Below the pieces are notes generated by a model. The model searched no databases and had not been told where the DNA came from. It worked only from the letters and a program-made list of their open reading frames with translations. From Andalucia godoyi And28 (taxonomy: Eukaryota; Protista; Jakobida), in NCBI GenBank assembly GCA_009859145.1, contig VRVR01000007.1, positions 302,448 through 366,447 of the forward strand: 64,000 nt of DNA, written 5' to 3'. The position numbers and the translations under genes are program-made. Below, piece after piece: positions 2,339-63,742 of the stretch. Numbering within the stretch: the stretch's first letter is position 1; every line of letters starts with the position of its first letter.

Positions 2339-2625
2339 TCCTGGGGACAAGACGAAGCAGGGGGGTCTCTCTTTCTCCTTTTCTCTCTTTCTGTCTTTCT
2401 GTCTTTCTGTCGGCTGACACTGCGAAGTTCCCAGTATCCGACTCGGGTGTAGAGCATTGCAGGAAGGTCGTTCGTGGTATTTCGACAACTGGCGACAGAA
2501 CCGCTGAGAAACGCGTTTCCATTTGCGCAGTGAAGAGGATAATCGGGAGACGACCAAAGGAGAGGATCGCGCAAGTGGCAAAAGTAAAGAAGTTGGAGCA
2601 GGGCGTGGGGGGGATTGGAAAAACC

Positions 2626-4119
2626 ATGAGCAGGTTTTACGACTTTGATGCGCTCGATGCTGGACAGGTGTCTGAGAGTGATGTGTTTACGATAACAACA
2701 GAGCTGCTTTCGAAGCGCTCGCATGGGCAATCGCTGGCGTTTTTCTCCACGCGCGTTTCGCCGAGTGGAAGCAATGACGAGGAGCATGACGACTCTGTTG
2801 CAATTCAGCTTGTGATGGCCAACCAGTATTTCTCTGGAACTAAGGAAGAGTTTGCAAATTGCTTGTCGTTCATGTCGGTCCAGTCTGTGGTCGAGGCTAC
2901 TGTGCGTCCGGGGAAGTCACGACGTGGAGAGCCTAGTTTATTTTGCACCGACGCCAAGTTGTTGCGCTGTTCCCCGCATCCTGAAACAATCATGTTGATT
3001 TTGGAGGCGGTCGATTCGGGCTCTCTGAGCAGAGACAAGGCGTGTGCGGTCCTGCGTTGCACCAACCAGGAGCTTGGAAACATGCTTATCTGTCTTGGAA
3101 AGGAGGCGCTGCAAAGCGACTTGAAAAGACTGCTGAATATCCAGGCTCGGGTTCTGCACGATTTGCCAGCTGACCATACGCGAATCCGCAAAACAAGACT
3201 GAGTGCAGCACAGTTCAAGGTTGTCGAGGAGGCAAGGGAGTGCTGTGCCTCTGTGCCGCTGCAGCATTCGGACGAGGCCGCTGCGCTCCCGAACGAGATC
3301 CTCGATGCAATTCAATCGCATTTGCCGAACGGGCTGTCCGACGAAGAAAAGAACAGACGGATTGAATACCTTCAGAGGAAGAAGATTAGGCAGATCAGCT
3401 GGTTTGTAGCACACTTGAAATCCACGATAGACAAGATTGCAGGCGCCAAGGGTTCGAAAGCCCTTGCAATATGGGATGTGGGTGGTGGCCGTGGCGATCT
3501 TGCCGCAGCTGTTGCCTGGGTGTTTCCTGAATGCTCTGTTCGCGTGCTGGACATCCAGCAGTCGTCGCTTCGGGCAGGTCAGCTCGTGAGTCGCACGCTC
3601 GGATTGACGAACATCGTGTTTGAACATGCCGACTTTCTTCAGAAGCTCAAGGCATCAGACTGCAGCAAGACTGAGTCTTGTGAGATTGCAGATGCCCCAG
3701 ACCTGGTGATTGCCCTTCACGCATGCGGTGGGCTTTCCGATGCCATTTTAGCGTACGTCGCCACACACCCTGCCGCAAGCTGTCTCATCTGCACTTGCTG
3801 TTTCACGAAGAACGTGGATCTTGCATTCCGTGCGTGGGATCGGGTGAACATGCCCCAGGGCCACTGGAGAAGCGTAGCTCCGTCTACCGACTTCTGTTCC
3901 GAAGTCTGCCGAATCGCAGAGAGCGTGAGCTGCGAAAGTGAGTCGCAGCTTGCCATGCACTGCTGCAACACGTTCCGATTGCGGGGGGTTCATCTCGTGT
4001 CTCAGGCTTCTGTGTGGAACCGTGCTTCATCTTTGAGCGAGCTCTTGACGTTCCCCTTGACGTACTCTGCTAAGAACCAAGTGATTCGTATTCTTCGCAT
4101 TCAATCCTCCTGCACTTAA
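2626..4119 (+). CDS. SAM-dependent methyltransferase (Methyltransf_32/GSTCD/METTL25-like) with an N-terminal LysRS-like OB-fold, ~497 aa
   Basis: Motif I WDVGGGRGDL, ALHACGGLSD and ICTCCF; the N-terminus resembles the class IIb aaRS anticodon-binding domain (VRPGKSRRGEPSLF). Start taken at ATG 2626 in an A-rich context. Confidence 0.75.
   Translation: MSRFYDFDALDAGQVSESDVFTITTELLSKRSHGQSLAFFSTRVSPSGSNDEEHDDSVAIQLVMANQYFSGTKEEFANCLSFMSVQSVVEATVRPGKSRRGEPSLFCTDAKLLRCSPHPETIMLILEAVDSGSLSRDKACAVLRCTNQELGNMLICLGKEALQSDLKRLLNIQARVLHDLPADHTRIRKTRLSAAQFKVVEEARECCASVPLQHSDEAAALPNEILDAIQSHLPNGLSDEEKNRRIEYLQRKKIRQISWFVAHLKSTIDKIAGAKGSKALAIWDVGGGRGDLAAAVAWVFPECSVRVLDIQQSSLRAGQLVSRTLGLTNIVFEHADFLQKLKASDCSKTESCEIADAPDLVIALHACGGLSDAILAYVATHPAASCLICTCCFTKNVDLAFRAWDRVNMPQGHWRSVAPSTDFCSEVCRIAESVSCESESQLAMHCCNTFRLRGVHLVSQASVWNRASSLSELLTFPLTYSAKNQVIRILRIQSSCT

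Positions 4120-8156: not shown

Positions 8157-8239
<83 letters not shown>
8157..8239. repeat. (TC)n microsatellite, ~41 units, directly upstream of the GST-like start codon
   Basis: Perfect dinucleotide run read directly from the sequence. Confidence 0.98.
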
Positions 8240-8243
<4 letters not shown>

Positions 8244-8816
8244 GTCTGTTTCTTACTTACTCACTTATTGTGTTTTGCTTGCGATCTGTGCGTCTTCAGA
8301 CGCGCTGCTCAGGTACTGGAGGGTTGCTTCAAAACCTGCTGGAACTGCATGAGCCTGTCGCAGCAGATTCCGCTTTTTTGTGCAGAACAGCTTGAATCGT
8401 TCGTAGACAGTCGGAGCTGGATCGCATTTGGGAATGTGCGCACCGCAAAATGTCGGTACGAGCGCAGTCTCCGAGGAGCGGGCACTTTCGCGGAACCCTA
8501 GCTCTCACACTGTTGTCACAACCCTAGTTTGCTCACACACACACTGGAGCCTTCTGTACGGGCAGAGTTGAAAAGCGCCATGCAGATTGTTGTTGCAGCG
8601 CTGTTATGGTTGTGTGGTTTGTGTTTTTGGAATAACCGCGTGCGTTCCTGTCTTCCCGAAACACACACGCACTCACACACATACACACACAGAGCCCTGC
8701 TCATGCTCATAGTCGTAGTCGTAGTCGTAGTGCACTAGTACAAGAAATTCAGAGGGCAGGTAAAGAAAAAGTAAGCGCAGCAGTAGTTTTGGCTATCACG
8801 CAAAGCCTTCTTCGTC

Positions 8817-13410: not shown

Positions 13411-16400
13411 TCAAATTGCGTCAAACATTGATGACGAATCGAGCGTCTTCATCGACTCCAAGAGAAATCGAGCTCTTTCAAGCCGCCGATTCGGGCGAGC
13501 GACATTCTCAAACGCAAGGATTTGCAGATTGATGTAAGGAAGCACGAGCATCCTTGGTTTGCGCATCGAGCCAATGTAGACTTCTTGCTCGGATGCAACC
13601 CCTCGACCATCCTTATAGTACGGTTGTACGTAAAAAATCTTGTCAGCCGACAGTGTTTTGGAATGGTGCCTGGACAAAGCCGACGGATCGGACCAAGAGC
13701 ATTCGCTCGACTTAATCATTTCGTAGAGAAGCAGTTCTTGATCAGAGAACGAGTCCAGCACAAACTTTGAGCCGAGTTTCTCATTGCCTCTCGGAAGGTA
13801 CGTAAATGCACCGATCTTTCTCATAATGTCGCAGATGCATTCCCATTTTTGGTCGTCCCACCCCAAAAGACCCCGAACAACAGTATCAAACGCACGAACT
13901 TTTGCGCGGCCAGTGGAGTCATCCACCGTCCCAAGCAACGACATGGAAAACACTTCTCCAGCAACACTACTGCAGCCCTTTGCACACTTTTGCCGACTTC
14001 CACCACCGACAACAGATCCACATTGGCCGCATTTTGCAAGAATCTCAAGCCGACTCAGTGATATGAGGTTGCCAGTTATCGCATGCAAGCAAGGGAGCAA
14101 ATCGGGACTTACTACCAGATCGTGCAGAGTTGAGGATGGAACCTTTTTCCACTCTTCCAAAGGTGGCGATGCCGCTGATTCGACCACCAGGCAGCTTTCC
14201 GGCTCCGAAGCAAGATAGACATGACCGGTTTTGGGACTCACCTTCCGCTTGAAATACTGCAGAAGTACGAGCATGCCCGCAAAAAGCGGTTCGATAAAAA
14301 AACATGAAGACGGCGCCACATAACAGGAAACGGTATCCGGAGTGTCTGTTCCGCGGATCACCAAGAACAGTTTCGCATTGTCATCCATACGCTTCTCCAT
14401 GCTGACAATGAAGCCCTCAACACAAATGATGTCAGAGGTCGACGGAAAACCGTGCAACAACAAGCTTCGAACACTTCTCTTTTCTAGTACTTGCAAAGTA
14501 GAGGCACAGTTCTGGCGGAGAGCAGCCTTCTCCTCCGGCTCCAGATTGTCGATTCCAACGGGGATTGCCGTGACGATCCCAGCTTCTTCACGAAATTCAA
14601 CAACCGTCCCCGGGATGACATCAACAAATCGATCAGCGCTAACATATCGCGAGCAAACTTTCCTTGTTCGGACATCCGAGAACACAACTGCCAATCCACC
14701 CTGTGGACTACTGCGCGGAGCAACGCGTGAAACAAGCTGCAAGCTGCGGAGGCGTTCAAACCGATTCTGCAGTTTTGAATTCGGTCCGCGAATATCAACA
14801 TTGCACTGAAGAGGATACAGCTTGAGCTCTCCATTCTGGAAAGCAAAGAAACATGGATCACGCAAGAGCCGCACCACGTATACGTTGGTCTGAGACGCAA
14901 ATCTCCAGGATTGACTGCTGATGGGTTCGATTGTGAACTGTGGAATGATTACGACAAGATCTCGAGTGGGACACGATTCCGATTCTGCAGCTCTTGCGAT
15001 TTCTCTGTCGAATGGCAGCAAATACACAGCATCCTGATTGAGCTGCGCAGACACCAATGTCAGCGAACCGGCGCTGTCGATGACCACTCTGCCTACCAAA
15101 AATGAACAATTAGTGTTGCTCGCTTCTGAGATCAGAAGTGGAGCACGAATAGGAAGATTTTCTTGCCCTGGCGAGAAGAACTCCTCCATCACGCTCCTTG
15201 TCTTTAGCTGCTGGATTCCCCAACCACAGACGTCTGCAGCGTACGTGTGCACTCTGCTAATAATATCCACGACAAGGATCTCTTTGACGGTCTTGAAAGG
15301 CCGACGTAAGGCGATCAGATCATCAATCAATGAAAACCAGAAGAGCAAGCTCGGCGCAGACCATCGTCTCGACAGTTTGACAACGTCGGAATGCGCCAAA
15401 ACAAGCGGAAGAGGAACATGGGGAATCCCTGACAGCAACCCAAACCCGCTGACCTGCACGGTCGTTCGTAGCGTGGCAACGCACACGACCTCTGAGCTGA
15501 GGTCTGATTTTGCGAAATGGGACTCGGCACGTCCAGCATGGCGACTAGACGGGATGTGCACCAACAGTGCATTGTGAATCTCGACACTTGTTCCTGGGCG
15601 GAACGCCAGCCCATACGTCGACCACGAAGAATAGCACGGGAAAAAACGAACCTTTCCGTCAAGAACGATTTCTCCACGCCGTTGAACAATGCTGGTGATG
15701 GCACCTTCGTACGTCAAGTATCGACTTGATGCATTCCATTCGCTGTGCAGCATGTCCTCCATTTTGGAAGTCAAGGTGTGTCTCTCAGTCGGGGATGGGA
15801 CATAGGAGTCCACCACGGTTTCCGACGTGTCCTCGAACAGCTTCCATCCCTGCATCTCCACGGGCCTCACGTGTGAAAGCGAGATCCACAGATGTGGTCT
15901 CAGCTGACCCATTGCGTGACACACCAAGGCATTGGAATGCGACAGTACGAGAAACACTCGAAATGACTCGGAGGGCCTGTCCACAGGAACACACAATAAA
16001 TCTGCAAAAAACCCAGATTTTTCATTTGAGCCTTGCACAATGGACGAAACTGCACACAGCAACCCTCGAAATGCTTTCCGAGTCATTGTTGGTGCGCTGG
16101 ATGCAAACTGCAATGCGTTTCGCCGCGGAATCACCTCTGGCGTAATCTTTTCCACAGAAACCTCCAAGTGAATAATCGCCTGTCGTTGGGCAGCGTCTCT
16201 CCGAAAACAGGGATCCACTCCAACCACCGAAAACGGCCCCCTGACGATCACTCCACTTCCAGGTCTGAAATGAGATGGCCGATTCATCTGATTGTTCACA
16301 CTCCCCGGGCCAACGTCATTTTGAGACGCAAGCAAAACAGACTCGTCTACAGACATGATTTTTCTACAAAGCATCAGAAACGTGACAAAAGTTATGCCGT

Positions 16401-16774
16401 GCATTACACAACAAAAAGAAGAATGAAAAAAACGATTGTTAGCAAGAAATAAGCAACACGACTCCATAAACAGACAAACGCCTCTTTCAACGTTGTGTAC
16501 TCCCTTCTTGTTGTTGTTGTTGTTGTTTTTTTGTTTTTGTTTTTGTTTTTTTGTTTTGGTTTGCTGAAGATGCATACGCACAAATCATCGGAATTCTTGC
16601 ATTTCCATCTTCGAGAAACACAATGAATCCGAATGCATAGATGGAGTCCGAGCAGTCCAGAGTCAAAGAGCCTGCAATTTCAAAGGATGAATCATATTCC
16701 CGAAAGTATGGAGGAAACTGAGCAGCGCGGACAACATCAGCGATCGTCACTCTTTTGGTGGAAAAGAGACTCAT
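13411..16774 (-). CDS. CTC1: CST complex subunit CTC1-like (multi-OB-fold telomere protein), two exons, ~1049 aa
   Basis: Exon 1 16774-16578, exon 2 16363-13411. Segments recalled as similar to plant CTC1: TIADVV at the N-terminus, FLEDGNARI, YEGAITSIVQRRGEIVLDGKV...FRPGTSVEIHNALLV, a CGQC..C zinc ribbon and GTVDDSTGRAKV. The exact start is uncertain. Confidence 0.65.
16364..16577 (-). other. Spliceosomal intron, 214 nt
   Basis: Donor GTATGCAT, branch TGCTAAC (16444-16438), TTTGTAG acceptor; phase 2 joins ORF 16487..16825 to ORF 13411..16581. Confidence 0.75.
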
Positions 16775-40345: not shown

Positions 40346-43300
40346 ATGAGCAATCTCGAGATGCGTGGTTTGACGATGTTCATTTCGGACATTCGAAACT
40401 GCCGAACAAAGGATCTTGAACAGAAGCGTATCAACAAGGAGCTTGCGAAAGTGCGCCAGAAGTTCAAGGAGGACACCAAGATGACTGGATATGACCGCAA
40501 AAAGTACATTGCCAAGCTACTGTATATTTTCATGCTTGGCTACAATGTGGATTTTGGCCATATCGAGGCGGTTCGTCTGCTTTCGTCTGACAAGTATTCT
40601 GAGAAGCACCTAGGATACCTTGCTTGCACGCTGCTTCTTGATGAAACCCACGAGTTGCTGACTCTGATCATCAACTCTGTTGCGCAGGACTTGCTGTCCA
40701 ACAATGAAAACTTCCAGTGCCTTGCCCTGACTGCGATTGCAAATGTCGGCGGAAAGCAGTTTGCCGAAGCCCTGTGTGGCGAGGTCATCAAGGTGCTTAC
40801 GGAGCGTGAGACCAAGACACCTGCTGTCAAGAAGGCGGCGCTGACGCTGCTTCGACTGTACCGAAAGTACCCCGAAGTGTTCCCTCCTGATGAATGGTGC
40901 CAGAAAGTTGTCGGACTGTTGGACCGTCCAGATCTTGGTGTACTGACTTCCGTCGCTTCTTTGCTGGTCGGTCTCGTTTCCGACCATCCTGATGCGTATG
41001 AGGGCGCGGTTCCCCGTTCTGTCCGCGTGTTGGTCAAGATTGTGTTGCAGAAGGACTATTCCTCCGATTACGTATACTATGGAGTGCCTACTCCTTGGCT
41101 CCAGGTCAAGCTTCTTCGCTTGCTGCAGTACTATCCGCCCCCTGCCGATCAGACTCTCCAGGCACGAATCAACGAGGTCTTGACCCGCATCATTGGCGGC
41201 TCTGAAATTGTTCCCAAGGCACCGAACAAAACGAATGCAATCCATGCAGTCCTGTACGAGGCCATTGCCCTTGTTATTGCGTACAACAACAACCCCGAGC
41301 TGCTTACACAGGCTGTCACCATCTTGTCACGCTATCTCGTTGTCAAGGACGCCAACCTCAAGTATCTCGCTCTCGAGTCGCTCGCCCGCGTTGCCACCCA
41401 CGAAGCAATGAAGAAGCAGCAAGAAACAGTCGTTGCGTCTCTCAAGGATGCGGACATTTCCATTCGCCGCCGTGCGCTCGAGGTTCTGTACTGTCTTTGC
41501 GATGCCTCCAATGCAGAGGATATTGTTCGCGAGTTGCTGGAGTATCTGCAGGTTGCAGATTTTGCGATCCGCGAAGATCTAGTGTTGCGTATTGCGCTGC
41601 TTGCAGAAAAGTTTGCTCCGTCCCCCGGTTGGTTCCTGGACACCTGCATGAAGCTTTTGCACACTGCCGGTGACTATGTAACAGACGATGTGTGGTTCCG
41701 CGTCGCCCAGATTGTGACAAACACTCCGGATATCCATGCGTATGCAGCAGAGCAGGTTTTGAAGGAGGTTCGCAACCCTGCTGCCCACGAAACCGCCATC
41801 AAGATTGGAGCGTACATTCTTGGAGAGTACGGTCGCAGCCTTGACGTCTCTGGTGCGGACGTTTTTGATGCGCTGCATGCCAAGTACGTCACGGTTTCGG
41901 CGAAGACGCAGGCCCTTTTGCTGAATTCCTATGTGAAACTGCGTGCATCTTTCGCGTCTGATGGAGCACTTCGGGATCGTGTTTCCCGCGTCTTCACGCA
42001 GATGCAGTCGTCCATGGATCCAGAAGTTCAGCAGCGTGCATGCGAGTACTCGTACATGCTGGAAGCTGGCCAGGGCTTCTATGCGTCTGTCCTGGAGGAA
42101 CTTCCCGCTTTCCCAGAACGTGAGTCGTCCATCCTTCGTCAGCTGAAGCAGAAAGAACAAGACACCGTCGACAAGTCTGTGTGGACCAAGAAGCAAGAAC
42201 AGGAGAATGCAGCCGGTGAGGAAGGCGAGCAGCAAGAAGAGCAGCAACCAGAGGTAGAGCGCGCTGCTCCTCTCCGTTCTGCGAGCCAACAGCAGCAGAA
42301 GAAGTCCGAGCCCCTTGATTCGCTTTTGGATCTTGGAAACTCGGAACCGATTTCGTCCTCGGGATCTAAGAGCTCCGGCAACGCGGGCGACATCCTGGAT
42401 CTTCTCTCTGGCCCCTCCGCCGCACCTTCACACTCGGCATCGTCCTCTTCTTCTGGAGGACTTTCTGCGGCTTCCCTGTTCGGCGGCCCGGTTGCTGCCC
42501 AATCGGCACAACATGCGGCGCCTGCCCCGTCTGCTCTTGACGACATCTTTGGAGGCCCCGTCAACGTATCGACTGCAGCGTCTGCCTCCTCAGTCGACAT
42601 CAACACTGTGGGATCGAACAACTGCAACGTCTCTCCGGAAGCCATCAAGGCCTCCGCCCGCAATTTGGCGATCCAGGACCGTGGCGTGCTCTTTGAGGAC
42701 GAGCGTGTTCAGGTTGGCTGCGTTGCCCAGTTTGCCGGAGCTGCTGCTCAAGTCGGTCTGTTCTTTGGAAACAAGGCTTCCGCTCCTCTTACGCAACTCA
42801 GCATTCAAGTGCACAGCAGTGATCCGAATGCTCTCCGCATCCAGACCTCTGCACTGCCACCAATGGTCACTCCGCGCCAGCAAGCTCAGGCGACTGTGCA
42901 GGCCCAGATGTCCGCACCATTCGAGGAGGCACCGCACGCAGTCATTTCATACAACCTAGGTGCGCAAAGTTTCACCGCGGTTGTCAGCTTGCCGATCTTG
43001 GTTACAAAGTTCTTCGCTCCGATGCAGGCTGCAAACTCGGAACAGTTTTTCGGGCGGTGGCGATCCATCGTTGGTGATGGAACCGAGCAGCAGGAAGCAT
43101 TCAAGTCTTCCCGACCGGTTGATGTCCAGAATGTGCAGAGAATCCTCGGAAACGGACTCCGCTTCTCGACGCTCTCTGGAATTGACCCGAATCCCGCCAA
43201 TGCAGTTGCTGCTGCGTCCTATGGACAAGTTCCGGTTATGGTCCGTGTGGAGACGAATGCGCAGTCGAATGCGTACCGTGTGACCGTCCGTGCGTCCTCC

Positions 43301-43351
43301 GCCCCTCTCGCCAGAGCGACTCTGCAGATTGTGAAGGCACAACTTGCGTAA
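40346..43351 (+). CDS. AP2A: AP-2 complex alpha adaptin, 1001 aa
   Basis: MRGLTMFISDIRNC..EQKRINKELAKVR, YYGVPTPWLQVKLLRLLQ, a hinge with LLDL motifs and an ear/platform domain. Confidence 0.95.
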   Translation: MSNLEMRGLTMFISDIRNCRTKDLEQKRINKELAKVRQKFKEDTKMTGYDRKKYIAKLLYIFMLGYNVDFGHIEAVRLLSSDKYSEKHLGYLACTLLLDETHELLTLIINSVAQDLLSNNENFQCLALTAIANVGGKQFAEALCGEVIKVLTERETKTPAVKKAALTLLRLYRKYPEVFPPDEWCQKVVGLLDRPDLGVLTSVASLLVGLVSDHPDAYEGAVPRSVRVLVKIVLQKDYSSDYVYYGVPTPWLQVKLLRLLQYYPPPADQTLQARINEVLTRIIGGSEIVPKAPNKTNAIHAVLYEAIALVIAYNNNPELLTQAVTILSRYLVVKDANLKYLALESLARVATHEAMKKQQETVVASLKDADISIRRRALEVLYCLCDASNAEDIVRELLEYLQVADFAIREDLVLRIALLAEKFAPSPGWFLDTCMKLLHTAGDYVTDDVWFRVAQIVTNTPDIHAYAAEQVLKEVRNPAAHETAIKIGAYILGEYGRSLDVSGADVFDALHAKYVTVSAKTQALLLNSYVKLRASFASDGALRDRVSRVFTQMQSSMDPEVQQRACEYSYMLEAGQGFYASVLEELPAFPERESSILRQLKQKEQDTVDKSVWTKKQEQENAAGEEGEQQEEQQPEVERAAPLRSASQQQQKKSEPLDSLLDLGNSEPISSSGSKSSGNAGDILDLLSGPSAAPSHSASSSSSGGLSAASLFGGPVAAQSAQHAAPAPSALDDIFGGPVNVSTAASASSVDINTVGSNNCNVSPEAIKASARNLAIQDRGVLFEDERVQVGCVAQFAGAAAQVGLFFGNKASAPLTQLSIQVHSSDPNALRIQTSALPPMVTPRQQAQATVQAQMSAPFEEAPHAVISYNLGAQSFTAVVSLPILVTKFFAPMQAANSEQFFGRWRSIVGDGTEQQEAFKSSRPVDVQNVQRILGNGLRFSTLSGIDPNPANAVAAASYGQVPVMVRVETNAQSNAYRVTVRASSAPLARATLQIVKAQLA

Positions 43352-53188: not shown

Positions 53189-54373
53189 CTAGAAAGACTT
53201 TGGAGGTGAAGCTGTGCCAAGCAGTAGCGAGCCAGTCATGCCGGAGTTTGCCATTGCTGTTGCACATGTGTGGAACAGCGCGGACTCGAGAGCAAGTTGT
53301 CGAGACTTTGCTTCCAAGGAGTCTGCAGCATCTTGGACAAGTTTTGAAGCAGAGATGGGCGGAATGTCGTGAGGGAGCTTCTGTGGATTGGAAGCGGTGG
53401 TCACAGGCTCGTGCGCTGGCAGCGCCGTAGGTTGCAGAAGTGAGTCTTGGGTGTCGTATGAGCAGTCCCATAGAACAAGGTTTTCTGCCGCAGCCAGACC
53501 CATTGTGCGTACATTGCACGAGTCGTGGCCTTGGAGAAGCTGCTCCACCTGCACCACGGACACGGATCCCTTGCCAACCTGCAGCAGAACCGCCATCATG
53601 CATCGCACTTGGTGGTACAGGAAGCTTGATCCTCGAATGTGAAAGGCATAGATGGGAAACTGTGGAACGTGAAGCCCGGACAGTTTGATGATTCTCGATT
53701 CGTAGACGTCGCGAAGAAACGACCCACAGGACTCCTCGTCTTCTGCCGCAGCAGTTTCGTCGAACTCGGCGTTCGGAGCCACAAGGCCTGGGCCACTACC
53801 CGCAGAACCAGACGATGCACGGCTTCGCGAAGGTCTGCACAGCAACTGAAAGTTAACTTGGGATCCCACAAACCTTGCAGCGGCACTGTTCATTTCGCAC
53901 ACGTCAAGGCTGCCGTTCTCTGGAGCACCAAATAAGTACAAGTACGTCCGCGATTTGCAAATAAACCGCGCATGAAACGTCTCGGATGCTCTTTGAGCCT
54001 GGTATATCCGAATGGACTCAGGGAGCGACTTGTTCATGCTCTTCACAAACAGCGATAGATCCTGCATCTGCCGAACCCTCAACGACACCACCTGTCCCAT
54101 TGCCGACACGCCCTTGTCAGTACGACCGCACCTTGAATACGAAATCACGTGTCGGTTTGTGCTCGGAACCATGTTTGTACGAACCAGCGCGCGAAACATA
54201 TAGTCTTCTACAGAGCTCCCCGAGTCATCCAAGAAGTAGTCATGCGTCATCGAATGTGACGTTGCGAACCCTTGAAATGCTGGTCCATAGTAAAAAAACT
54301 TGACTGCAATCGGCTCGATCACCTGTTTTGTCCAGTCCATCACTTTCCGCCGCTTCGCTTCTCGACTAATCAT
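53189..54373 (-). CDS. PUS3: tRNA pseudouridine synthase, TruA family (Pus3/Deg1-like), ~394 aa
   Basis: YSRCGRTDKGVSAMGQV catalytic Asp motif, FHARFICKSRTYLY and GSSFLYHQVRCMM. Confidence 0.85.
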   Translation of the reverse strand: MISREAKRRKVMDWTKQVIEPIAVKFFYYGPAFQGFATSHSMTHDYFLDDSGSSVEDYMFRALVRTNMVPSTNRHVISYSRCGRTDKGVSAMGQVVSLRVRQMQDLSLFVKSMNKSLPESIRIYQAQRASETFHARFICKSRTYLYLFGAPENGSLDVCEMNSAAARFVGSQVNFQLLCRPSRSRASSGSAGSGPGLVAPNAEFDETAAAEDEESCGSFLRDVYESRIIKLSGLHVPQFPIYAFHIRGSSFLYHQVRCMMAVLLQVGKGSVSVVQVEQLLQGHDSCNVRTMGLAAAENLVLWDCSYDTQDSLLQPTALPAHEPVTTASNPQKLPHDIPPISASKLVQDAADSLEAKSRQLALESALFHTCATAMANSGMTGSLLLGTASPPKSF

Positions 54374-54386
54374 CTTTTCACTCACT

Positions 54387-57791: not shown

Positions 57792-60700
57792 ATGGTGTCG
57801 CGAGAATCGATTATTCGAAAGTTGTTCCAGGAGCGCATTTTGCTTATTGATGGAGCAATGGGAACCATGGTTCAGCGTCACAAGTTGCAGGAAAAGGATT
57901 TCCGAGGCAAGCGGTTTGTGGACCATTGTCATGACTTGAAAGGAAACAACGACATTCTTGTGCTTGTTCGCCCTGATGTGATTTCGGGGATCCACGAAGC
58001 ATATTTGGAAGCGGGAGCTGATATTGTCGAGACAAACACATTCAACGGGACGAGCATTTCGCAGTCTGATTACAAGATGGAGCACATTGTGTATGAAATC
58101 AACTTTACTGCGGCGAAACTGGCAAAAGCCGCCTGCGAAAAGTACTCTGCCATCACTCCGAACAAGCCCAGATTTGCGGCGGGTGCTATTGGACCAACGA
58201 ACCGGACGGCATCGATCTCGCCCTCCGTGGAGAATCCAGCATTCCGAAACGTAACGTTTATGGAACTGGTCACTGCATACAAGGAGCAGATTTCTGGACT
58301 GGTGGATGGTGGGGCGGACATCTTGCTGGTCGAAACGATCTTTGATACGCTGAACGCAAAGGCTGCCTTGTTTGCGATTGATGAGTACTGGGAGGAGCAC
58401 CCAGCCTCCGAGAGATTGCCGACAATGATTTCAGGAACCATTGTAGATTTGTCCGGGCGGACGCTGTCGGGACAGACCACAGAGGCATTCTACACGTCCG
58501 TGGCTCATGCGAAGCCTGTGTGCATTGGCCTGAACTGTGCTTTGGGTGCGGATCAGATGCGACCCTTCATGCAGCGACTCAGCAATATTGCAGAGTGCTT
58601 CACACTCGCATATCCAAATGCCGGATTGCCCAATGCAATGGGTGGATACGATGAGACGCCGCAGCAATTTGCAGAAGCCGTCAAACAGTTCGCACTTGGC
58701 GGCCTGTTGAACATGGCTGGTGGCTGCTGTGGAACCACGCCAGACCATATCCGTGCTCTTGCGAAGGCCGTGGAGGGAGTCCGGCCTCGTATCACCAGTG
58801 ATCCGTGCCCGTATTTACGGTTGTCTGGTTTGGAATGCTTCACTCTCACGCCCGATATCCGGTTCGTGAACGTTGGCGAACGGTGCAATGTTGCTGGATC
58901 TAAAGTTTTCAAAAAACACATCGTCGCAGGAGAGTACGACCAGGCGATGGAAATTGCTCGCAAGCAAGTGGAGAATGGTGCGCAGGTGATTGACATCAAT
59001 TTTGACGACGGGCTGTTGGACGCCCATACGTGCATGCGCCGGTTTCTGAATCTGGCAATGACGGAGCCCGAGATTGCAAAGGTCCCGGTGATGGTGGATT
59101 CTTCCAAGTTTTCGGCGGTTGAGGCCGGTCTGCAGTGCATCCAGGGCAAGTCTATTGTGAATTCGATTTCGCTGAAGGAGGGTGAGGAGGCGTTCATGCG
59201 CACTGCCAGGATTGTCAAGCGATATGGAGCCGCCGTGATCGTGATGGCTTTTGACGAAAACGGCCAGGCTGTGGATGCGGACCGCAAGTTTGCAATTTGT
59301 GAGCGCGCATATCGGTTGTTGGTCGACAAGATTGGCTTTCCTCCACAGGACGTCATTTTTGACCCGAATATTTTGACGATTGCCACCGGCATTGATGAGC
59401 ATAACAACTATGGCGTCGAGTTCATCGAGGCTACTCGTCGCATCCGACAGAATCTGCCTGGAGCACACGTCTCAGGTGGTGTCTCCAATTTGTCCTTCTC
59501 TTTCCGAGGCCTGCAGGATTTGCGGGAAGCGATGCATTCTGTCTTCTTGTACCACGCAATTACTGCGGGCATGGATATGGGTATCATTAATGCTGGAGCT
59601 CTCCCAATCTACGAAGACATTGACAAGAGTCTTCTTACTCTTCTTGAGGACGCAGTGCTGAACAAGAATCAGGAAGCCACAGAGAAGCTGCTGGAGGAAG
59701 CGCAACGACAGCGCGAGGCAGGCTCGCAGACGTCAGGGAAGACTGGAGTTTCCGCTGTTCAGGATGCTTGGCGCCTTTTGCCGGTGAACGACCGCCTCAA
59801 GCATGCCCTTGTGAAGGGTGTGGTGGAGTTCATCGACGAAGATGTTGAGCTTGCCCGCCAGGCTGCTACTCGTCCTCTGGATGTGATCGAAGGGCCCTTG
59901 ATGGCTGGCATGAACTATGTCGGCGATCTGTTCGGTGCTGGAAAGATGTTTCTCCCCCAGGTTATCAAATCCGCTCGTGTCATGAAGAGGGCAGTGGCGC
60001 ATCTCATTCCGTTCATGGAAGCCGAGAAGTTGAAGCAACAACAAGCGGCTGGTGAAGCCGAAACAGGAAACAGGCAGAAGACTGTCGTGCTTGCGACGGT
60101 GAAAGGTGATGTTCACGATATTGGAAAGAACATCGTCGGAGTCGTTCTGGGGTGCAACAACTATCGCGTTGTTGATCTGGGTGTCATGTGCCCCTGCGAG
60201 ACAATTCTGGATGCCGTCCTACGGGAGAAGGCCGATATCCTCGGCCTTTCCGGGCTTATCACTCCATCTCTTGACGAAATGGTTCATGTTTCCAGAGAGA
60301 TGCAGCGCCGAGGAATGGCTCCCCTGCCGATGCTCATCGGTGGAGCAACTACATCTCGCATGCACACTGCAGTGAAGATTGCCCCACAGTACAGCGGACC
60401 CGCAATTCATGTTCTGGATGCTTCGCGAGCTGTTGCCGTTTGTTCGGCCTTGCTGGATGATTCTCAACGTTCTACGTACATGGACGATATCCGCGAGACG
60501 TACCAGGAAATGCGCGAAGAACACGAAGCGTCCCTTTCCGACCGACGGTTCCTTTCGCTTGAGCAAGCTCGTGCACGCCGATTTAATATTGATGCCGAGC
60601 CCGTCAAGAAAGGATCTCTGAAACCCCGTGTAGTTGGTGTTCAGGTGCTGGATAACTTTCCCCTTGAGGACTTGATTCCGTTCATTGACTGGAATCCGTT

Positions 60701-61565
60701 CTTCCAGATTTGGCAAATCCGTGGCAAGTATCCCAATCGCAACTATCCCAAGGTCTTCGATGATGAGACTGTTGGAGAAGAGGCAAAGAAGTTGTTCAAT
60801 GATGCCCAGGCAATGCTCAAAGTTATCACGGACAAGAAGCTCTTGACTGCACGTGGTATTGTTGCCATCTATCCTGCACTGGCCCGCGGAGACGATGTTG
60901 TGTTGTTTGATCCGGAGAATGAGGCTGTGGAAATCGGTACTCTGCATGGGTTGCGTCAGCAAGCGGAGAAGGACAACGTAGGAGATGCGTATATGTGCAT
61001 TTCCGATTTTGTCCTCTCCGAGAACGCTGCGACTGCTGGAGTGAAGGACCATGTTGGTTTGTTTGCAGTTTCAACCGGATTCGGTCTGGATGCCTTGGTG
61101 CATCAGTATGAAAAGGTTGAAATGGATGACTATCGAGCCATCATGGCCAAGGCCATTGCAGATCGGCTTGCAGAAGCATTTGCCGAGCACTTGCACAAGC
61201 TGGTTCGTGAACAGACCTGGGGATATGCGTCTGGCGAGCACTTGTCCACAGACGACTTGCTACGAGTGAAGTACCAGGGCATCCGCCCAGCACCCGGCTA
61301 TCCGTCGCAGCCGGACCACACGGAAAAGCAAACCATGTGGGACATTGCGCGCATTTTCCAGCGGACGGGTATTGCTTTGACGGACTCCTTTGCAATGGTT
61401 CCTGCTGCATCTGTATCTGGGCTGTACTTTGCCCACCCGGACTCCAAGTATTTTGCAGTTGGAAAAGTGCAAAAGGATCAAATCGTGGACTACGCGCGAC
61501 GAAAGAACATGTCTCTGCAGGATGTCGAGCGCTGGCTGTCACCGATCCTCTCTTATGACCCATAA
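57792..61565 (+). CDS. MTR: Cobalamin-dependent methionine synthase, 1257 aa
   Basis: DGAMGT, GLNCALG and GGCCGT (Zn ligands), [10 protein letters not shown] pterin domain, [10 protein letters not shown]12-binding motif and GIRPAPGYP activation domain. Confidence 0.98.
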
Positions 61566-63621: not shown

Positions 63622-63626
63622 AAAAA
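63622..63626 (-). terminator. RNA polymerase III oligo-T terminator of the 5S gene
   Basis: T5 run on the minus strand at the 3' end of the 5S sequence. Confidence 0.75.
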
Positions 63627-63742
63627 GTACAGCACTGGGAATTCCCGAGTGGTCACCCACCTCAGTACTACTCCAGCCTGAGAGCACTTGACTTCGCAAA
63701 TCGGACGGGATGCGGTATTTTCACTCTAGTATGGCCGTACCT
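63625..63742 (-). rRNA. 5S rRNA: 5S ribosomal RNA, ~118 nt
   Basis: Reverse complement reads AGGUACGGCCAUACUAGAGUGAAAAUACCGCAUCCCGUCCGAUUUGCGAAGUCAAG...GUAGUACUGAGGUGGGUGACCACUCGGGAAUUCCCAGUGCUGUACUU; the 5' and 3' ends pair (helix I) and conserved CGGCCAUAC, CCCGUCCGAU and AGUACU blocks are present. Confidence 0.97.

Follow-up and report, generated by a model that had tools for sequence, protein, structure and literature searches.

The 64,000-nucleotide stretch of Andalucia godoyi And28 DNA analysed here (contig VRVR01000007.1, positions 302,448–366,447 of the forward strand; the whole stretch is hereafter called the window) carries at 2626..4119 on its forward strand a gene for a protein of 497 residues, in which a domain resembling the anticodon-binding part of lysyl-tRNA synthetase (LysRS) is followed by a methyltransferase. 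The question raised by this locus is whether the two parts are truly what they resemble and, if so, what such an enzyme would modify. We found that the protein is a member of the Methyltransf_32 family carrying a LysRS-type anticodon-binding domain, and that this architecture is secure and widespread. The function that we favour, and hold to be fairly probable, is that of an S-adenosylmethionine (SAM)-dependent tRNA methyltransferase whose substrate is chosen by the LysRS-derived anticodon reader.

The N-terminal domain is an OB fold of the LysRS type

The original prediction, made from the sequence alone, had aligned residues ~20–120 with the N-terminal oligonucleotide-binding (OB) domain of LysRS, and the searches bore this out. 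The window sequence by itself gave weak matches in the PDB, the top three of which were all LysRS (E 0.22). The profile A2, an alignment of nine family N-termini, matched the LysRS of Entamoeba (E 1e-7), Cryptosporidium (E 5e-6) and human (E 1e-4) as well as the N-domain of E. coli LysS (E 5.5e-4); for AspRS and AsnRS the E-values were 0.08 or worse, and no OB fold other than the N-domains of class IIb synthetases was matched by this profile in the PDB. Furthermore, the Pfam family PF01336 (tRNA_anti-codon) matched five of the nine family members (best E 1e-7), and for one relative (P0007) PF01336 and PF13679, the Methyltransf_32 family, are both among the precomputed Pfam domains. The similarity of residues 20–118 (2683..2979, forward strand) to LysRS is far above chance, and it runs on into the LLR-x-x-P-x-P exit segment. 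A match to DUF6559, seen in one of the nine members under the cut-off (E 0.0069), was dismissed as a chance match.

The structure of this region was modelled with AlphaFold2 (AF2), both within the full-length protein and as an isolated domain. Strands were assigned by DSSP at residues 21–33, 37–44 and 58–65, followed by a helix at 73–82 and strands at 88–97 and 103–114, which is the b1-b2-b3-helix-b4-b5 topology of a five-stranded barrel with the helix between strands 3 and 4. The isolated domain was modelled with a predicted local distance difference test score (pLDDT) of 83 and a predicted template modelling score (pTM) of 0.76, so that the doubt raised in the original prediction, that the N-terminus might fail to model as an OB fold, was removed. 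The Foldseek comparison proposed along with it was run on the isolated domain against the PDB, and the top 50 matches were all eukaryotic LysRS chains (Plasmodium, human, Entamoeba and yeast), superposing with TMq of 0.61–0.70 and a root-mean-square deviation (rmsd) of 1.9–4.7 Å over ~100 residues at 18–26% identity. The window protein differs from LysRS here in a loop of ~13 residues inserted between strands 2 and 3.

The anticodon-contact residues of LysRS are conserved

In the cryo-electron microscopy structure of human LysRS with cellular tRNA-Lys3, the OB domain engulfs bases 33–37; F144 stacks on U35/U36, to which R136, Q155 and E195 bond, while K141, N159 and R161 touch U33 and the modified U34, whose 2-thio group has T191 and K193 packed against it (PMC11643047). 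A fragment of human LysRS was aligned to the family profile, and its numbering reproduced every residue named in that study. By this alignment, all four U35/U36-contact residues are identical in the window protein, namely Arg31 (2716..2718; R136), Phe39 (2740..2742; F144), Gln61 (2806..2808; Q155) and Glu102 (E195, the U36 contact), all encoded on the forward strand. The last of them closes the loop PGKSRRGE (residues 95–102; 2908..2931, forward strand), the counterpart of PGKTKKGE in eukaryotic LysRS, within which T191 and K193 have the conservative replacements S98 and R100. The same OB fold, the U35/U36 residues R, F, Q and E and the PGKxxxGE loop are thus held in common with the eukaryotic cytosolic LysRS of class IIb.

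The conservation of these residues was then counted across the family. Members with a single OB domain (n = 68) keep the Arg without exception (68/68), the Phe in 56 (82%) and the Gln in 58 (85%), and the first OB domain (OB1) of the members with two (n = 34) keeps the Arg and the Phe throughout (34/34 each) and the Gln in 32 (94%). In the second OB domain (OB2) of these proteins, which adjoins the linker, the Arg is present in 30 of the 34 and both the Phe and the Gln are lost; the intact OB1 beside such an OB2 suggests duplication followed by degeneration of one reader. In class IIb synthetases, the trio of Arg, Phe and Gln reads the base U35 at the centre of the anticodon, which is common to tRNA-Lys, tRNA-Asp and tRNA-Asn. 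The pattern says that the family would read U35 and that the subfamily of the window protein also keeps the LysRS-type U36 contact. On this residue pattern rests what we see as the strongest argument for the anticodon loop as the probable true ligand.

The C-terminal part is a helical linker and a Rossmann methyltransferase

No class II catalytic core follows the OB domain, as the Pfam and PDB matches to LysRS end near residue 118. Motifs 1, 2 and 3 of that core are absent, and the protein is therefore not a LysRS. Residues 119–497 comprise instead a helical linker and a Rossmann methyltransferase, in agreement with the original prediction, which had reported both the missing core and a methyltransferase of the Methyltransf_32 group with the motifs WDVGGGRGDL, ALHACGGLSD and CTCCF. 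These were located at residues 283–292, 363–372 and 389–393, respectively, and the Pfam family Methyltransf_32 (PF13679) matched residues 252–394 (3379..3807, forward strand) with E 7.5e-14 and 52.3 bits against a cut-off of 27. The same family was matched by all 17 of the relatives scanned. In the full-length AF2 model (mean pLDDT 82.7, pTM 0.60), an alternating strand-helix Rossmann domain occupies residues 281–492.

The conservation of the methyltransferase domain was followed in 89 full-length members. The SAM-binding motif I, D284-V-G-G-G-R-G290 (3475..3495, forward strand), is nearly invariant (D284 100%, G286 99%, G288 97%, G290 98%), and it is followed by the acidic residues D309 at the end of strand 2 (93%) and D336 (84%). 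The signature L364-H-A-C-G-G-L-S-D372 (3715..3741, forward strand) stands at the end of strand 4, the position of motif IV, with L364, H365, G368 and L370 at 100%, C367 at 99% and D372 at 97%. Both cysteines of C391-C392-F393 at the end of strand 5 (3796..3804, forward strand) are 100% conserved, and A431-E432, R451, F476 and S481-x-x-N484 are likewise conserved at 93–100%. On these motifs the enzyme looks catalytically competent, as far as can be predicted. The full-length Foldseek search was rejected as a guide to the substrate, its matches being dominated by generic small-molecule methyltransferases at TM 0.2–0.27 and an rmsd of ~20 Å.

The helical linker spans residues 119–275 (2980..3450, forward strand), as supported by the AF2 secondary structure, family conservation and linker length, and it is modelled with pLDDT mostly of 80–93. 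No Pfam family was matched by residues 120–250 in the Pfam scan. A flexible basic loop, HTRIRKTRLS (residues 185–194), lies within it, with pLDDT below 50 at residues 184–189 and with R188 present in 78% of members; R245 and the segment K252-K253-x-P-Q256 are also conserved. The spacing from the OB exit proline to K253-x-P-Q has a median of 132 residues and an interquartile range of 119–144, and this conserved length suggests a fixed spacing from the reader to the active site.

The fusion is a large family of protists and algae

To determine the distribution of the fusion, 1.84 billion cluster representatives (50% identity) were searched exhaustively with a profile, and 416 proteins were found at E <=1e-30. 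All of the best 150 of the 416 had E <1e-63, and most of the 150 match along the protein from the OB domain to its C-terminal end. When OB modules were counted at E <1e-3 in 159 family proteins, 73 had one, 43 had two (these proteins are 650–980 residues long) and 43 had none, many of the last being visibly truncated gene calls. At least 116 of the 159 thus carry one or two OB modules, and the fusion, far from being a singular case, makes up a large family in which one-OB and two-OB forms occur. The relatives come from marine metagenomes (TARA/ENA), JGI metagenomes and a few genome assemblies (e.g. GCA_041443045.1), their loci range from 39% to 68% GC, and the family is a large protist and algal one.

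Prokaryotes were scanned with two peptide patterns in one genome per bacterial or archaeal species, and no prokaryotic fusion was found among the matches listed. Among these matches, the only prokaryotic locus with both DxGGGRG and LHACGG is in a Myxococcales metagenome-assembled genome (JANXMC010000008.1; L007, 2001–2456), and it aligns to the methyltransferase domain alone (query residues 233–412, 25% identity), which makes it a possible bacterial relative of that domain. Within the limits of this pattern-based scan, the fusion appears to be eukaryotic.

Among the relatives, P0012, P0050, P0053, P0055, P0061 and ~40 more have tandem LysRS-like OB domains followed by the linker and the methyltransferase. 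The N-termini of P0050, P0053 and P0055 have a hydrophobic, signal-like stretch with an AGA|F or ISF motif after it and, judged by eye, resemble the presequences that target proteins to diatom plastids, and that of P0052 looks by eye like a mitochondrial presequence. The window protein has no presequence-like N-terminal extension. Additional domains were seen in two relatives: in P0145 (1188 residues) PPR repeats lie on the N-terminal side of the family region, and in P0162 a Methyltransf_16 lysine methyltransferase domain lies on its C-terminal side. Either could be a real fusion or a merged gene call.

The reading frame includes the OB domain

The gene at 2626..4119 is a single unbroken frame of 497 codons followed by a stop codon (4117–4119), as seen in the open reading frame (ORF) list and supported by the closest relative, P0002. 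The longest mechanical ORF starts further 5′ at the ATG at 2206, which would add 140 residues, and 2206 and 2626 are the only in-frame ATGs 5′ of the OB domain. The extension from 2206 runs antisense to the 5′ end of a Lipase_3 gene (ATG 2338–2336, minus strand), gave no match in the Pfam scan and has no counterpart in P0002. The ATG at 2206 was ruled out on these three grounds, and 2626 is therefore the supported start, from which it follows that the OB domain is part of the translated protein.

P0002, from the Logan assembly of SRR28401847, is a protein of 516 residues with 41% identity over 98% of the length, and its N-terminus MTSIDQLFDFESLRAGQV aligns with that of the window protein MSRFYDFDALDAGQV. 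It is a syntenic orthologue whose gene also lies head-to-head with a Lipase_3 gene. The original prediction had cautioned that translation might begin downstream of the OB domain; the N-terminus of the orthologue backs the start at 2626.

Comparison with known enzymes

The nearest known counterparts were compared with the window protein part by part. The human Methyltransf_32 proteins METTL25 and METTL25B/RRNAD1 (PF13679) resemble it in a Pfam score above the cut-off, in the Rossmann SAM fold and in an H-A-C-G element within the matched stretch. To our knowledge, neither has a domain of the aminoacyl-tRNA synthetase OB type. Both are listed as of “unknown function” in reviews of 2021, 2024 and 2026, and, their substrates not being known, they give no functional anchor for the window protein.

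The tRNA 2′-O-methyltransferase for position 4, TRM13/TRMT13, also combines an RNA-binding module with a Rossmann domain. Its family (PF05206) was matched weakly by five of the 17 family methyltransferase domains (best E 6.7e-5, 19–20 bits against a cut-off of 26), and in the two-OB members the match spans motif I through the H-x-C-G element; the window protein itself gave no match to PF05206 at E <=10 in the Pfam scan. TRM13 has zinc fingers instead of an OB fold and chooses its tRNAs by the acceptor stem, not by the anticodon. No zinc-finger family of the TRM13 type (CCCH/CHHC) was found in the window protein by the Pfam scan, its N-terminus being an OB fold. Among the families with a characterised member, TRM13 would therefore count as a weak, sub-threshold relative.

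Fusions of comparable design are known already, both as RNA-binding barrels on methyltransferases and as synthetase modules in other enzymes. The m5U methyltransferases RumA/RlmD have an N-terminal OB-type RNA-binding barrel (TRAM) followed by a SAM methyltransferase, and RumA (2bh2) was among the full-length Foldseek matches (E 1e-6); the TRAM barrel is, however, unrelated to the anticodon domain of aminoacyl-tRNA synthetases and reads no anticodon, and the catalytic motifs differ. The kinase GCN2 joins a tRNA-recognising, HisRS-like synthetase module to an unrelated catalytic domain, and there the whole degenerate HisRS body senses uncharged tRNA and regulates the kinase, whereas the window fusion keeps the anticodon reader alone, attached to a methyltransferase. 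No description of a synthetase anticodon reader joined to a methyltransferase, and no substrate assigned to one, was found in a full-text literature search, from whose coverage most subscription journals are absent. This agrees with the statement of the original prediction that no substrate assignment was known for such a fusion.

Proposed function and alternative readings

The original prediction had proposed an RNA-modifying enzyme with a borrowed synthetase anticodon reader. This proposal was strengthened, though not proven, by the identical U35/U36 contacts and the near-invariant trio. Based on the conserved residues, we suggest that the OB domain binds the anticodon loop in the manner of class IIb synthetases, in which case U35/U36 would be stacked on Phe39 and read by Arg31, Gln61 and Glu102. 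The tRNAs with a central U35 would be selected in this way, most likely tRNA-Lys (NUU), although tRNA-Lys specifically as the target is a tentative choice that we put at somewhat less than an even chance. The rigid helical linker of ~130 residues and its basic loop could span part of the tRNA body, and the Methyltransf_32 Rossmann domain, occupying what would be the place of the synthetase catalytic core, would bind SAM and methylate one nucleotide of the bound tRNA, with the invariant His-Ala-Cys-Gly-Gly and Cys-Cys elements presumably lining the active site. The retention of the OB domain, linker and methyltransferase as one unit, with at least 116 of the 159 proteins carrying the OB domain and with the linker length conserved, supports this function. 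We also counted in its favour the PPR repeats, an RNA-binding module, in one relative, the syntenic orthologue P0002 and the weak TRM13 matches described above.

Several observations weigh against a tRNA methyltransferase guided by its OB domain. The score of the window protein against PF01336 is 15.6 bits, which is under the Pfam cut-off of 27, and the OB domain and linker have no net basic charge. The LysRS residues that read U33 and position 34 are replaced in the alignment (K141 by S36, N159 by A65 and R161 by Q67), so that discrimination of the wobble base may differ from that of LysRS. The U36-contacting Glu is found in only 20 of the 68 single-OB domains (it is present in 26 of the 34 OB1 domains), and this variability indicates that specificity probably varies within the family. 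With regard to the catalytic half, the PDB sequence and fold matches are generic and uninformative on substrate class, the profile matches being confined to the SAM-binding half of many unrelated enzymes. Finally, no Methyltransf_32 member with an assigned substrate was found in the literature searched.

That last finding leaves room for a protein or small-molecule methyltransferase in which the OB domain is a docking or localisation module, contacting tRNA or some other RNA as a scaffold or sensor, or else a protein partner, and RNA is not the acceptor. The Foldseek and PDB neighbours, for the most part N- and O-methyltransferases of small molecules together with protein methyltransferases such as HemK and PrmA, would fit such an enzyme, as would the Methyltransf_16 domain of P0162; but the former reflect the generic Rossmann similarity of the full-length model at the low TM scores given above, and the latter may be a merged gene model. 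The strict conservation of the base-contacting Arg, Phe and Gln argues for an anticodon-like ligand, and the conservation of linker length suggests that reader and active site stand in a fixed geometry. We consider this alternative unlikely.

A second possibility concerns where on the tRNA the enzyme would act. The methyltransferase may have inherited the geometry of the synthetase, so that, while the OB domain holds the anticodon, the active site would come to lie at the acceptor arm of tRNA-Lys and carry out a modification there, such as a Trm13-like ribose methylation in the acceptor stem, or would even act on the 3′ end or the attached lysine; we regard this version as rather unlikely as well. 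If true, it would be the first known modification enzyme on an aminoacyl-tRNA synthetase chassis, and the tRNA modification that it makes would be specific to eukaryotes, addressed by the anticodon and widespread among marine algae and protists.

We also considered a wobble side-chain methyltransferase like Trm9 or CmoM, in which the OB domain would select U35 tRNAs with xm5(s2)U34 (Lys-UUU, Glu-UUC and Gln-UUG) and the methyl group would go to the side chain of base 34, within the anticodon loop. U35 is common to the three tRNAs with mcm5s2U34, and it is U35 that the family-wide trio would read, the U36-reading Glu being variable across the family. In addition, CmoM, the tRNA cmo5U34 methyltransferase (8joz/4htf), is the best PDB match of the methyltransferase profile (E 1.3e-7). 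This match is, however, confined to the generic SAM-binding half (profile positions 23–113), and many unrelated methyltransferases score nearly alike. An OB domain that engulfs the anticodon loop as that of LysRS does would leave little access to base 34 for a domain ~130 residues downstream, and the LysRS residues touching the position-34 modification are kept only in part (R161 being replaced by Q67). A Trm9/CmoM-like activity is improbable on this evidence.

The weakest of the alternatives, that the OB domain binds single-stranded DNA or RNA other than tRNA, as those of RPA and nucleases do, and that the enzyme methylates DNA, rRNA or mRNA, can appeal to the breadth of the OB family PF01336 and to an unverified rRNA-dimethylase-style annotation of METTL25B by GO inference, but it is very improbable as the profile and fold searches give class IIb synthetases, overwhelmingly LysRS, with no OB fold of the RPA or nuclease type, and as the protein keeps the residues that contact U35/U36 as well as the LysRS-specific loop PGK(S/T)(R/K)(R/K)GE.

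Most tRNA methyltransferases choose their substrates by tRNA shape or through partner proteins, and a tRNA methyltransferase that used a synthetase anticodon reader as its address would, if real, be a distinct solution to the problem of tRNA specificity. The hypothesis is directly testable by precise mutants of the conserved contact residues, and the family is a testable entry into Methyltransf_32. To Methyltransf_32 belong the human proteins METTL25 and METTL25B, which are among the last seven-beta-strand methyltransferases in human for which no substrate is known. The hundreds of clusters from genomes and marine metagenomes suggest that the modification made by the fusion family is likely to be common in the tRNA biology of protists and algae.

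Genomic setting

The window has ~50% GC and is typical of an intron-poor, gene-dense eukaryote with genes on both strands. The fusion gene is divergent from a gene on the minus strand (65–2338) for a multi-pass membrane protein whose C-terminal domain is a class 3 lipase (Lipase_3). The alignment of this protein with its orthologue (49.5% identity) begins at ORF residue 105, opposite residue 4 of the orthologue. The same head-to-head lipase partner was found at locus L001 (3497–5779, minus strand), where the lipase is 49.5% and the methyltransferase 41% identical to those of the window. The two genes have in common the divergent intergenic region at 2339..2625, which contains tandem TTTCTGTC repeats at 2366–2411, and L001 has the same arrangement.

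Long single-ORF genes elsewhere in the window encode a CTC1-like telomere protein (13411–16581, minus strand), AP-2 alpha adaptin (40346–43351, plus strand), a five-domain B12-dependent methionine synthase of 1257 residues (57792–61565, plus strand) and an axonemal dynein light chain. No tRNA gene was found within the 64 kb. A gene for a tRNA pseudouridine synthase of the TruA/Pus type (53189–54385, minus strand; PF01416, E 4e-23) lies ~49 kb from the fusion gene with no sign of linkage. A solitary, full-length 5S rRNA gene (63624–63742, minus strand; Rfam RF00001, 100.8 bits, E 7e-21) sits among protein-coding genes, outside any rDNA array, and an intergenic (TC)45 microsatellite is present at 8157–8247.

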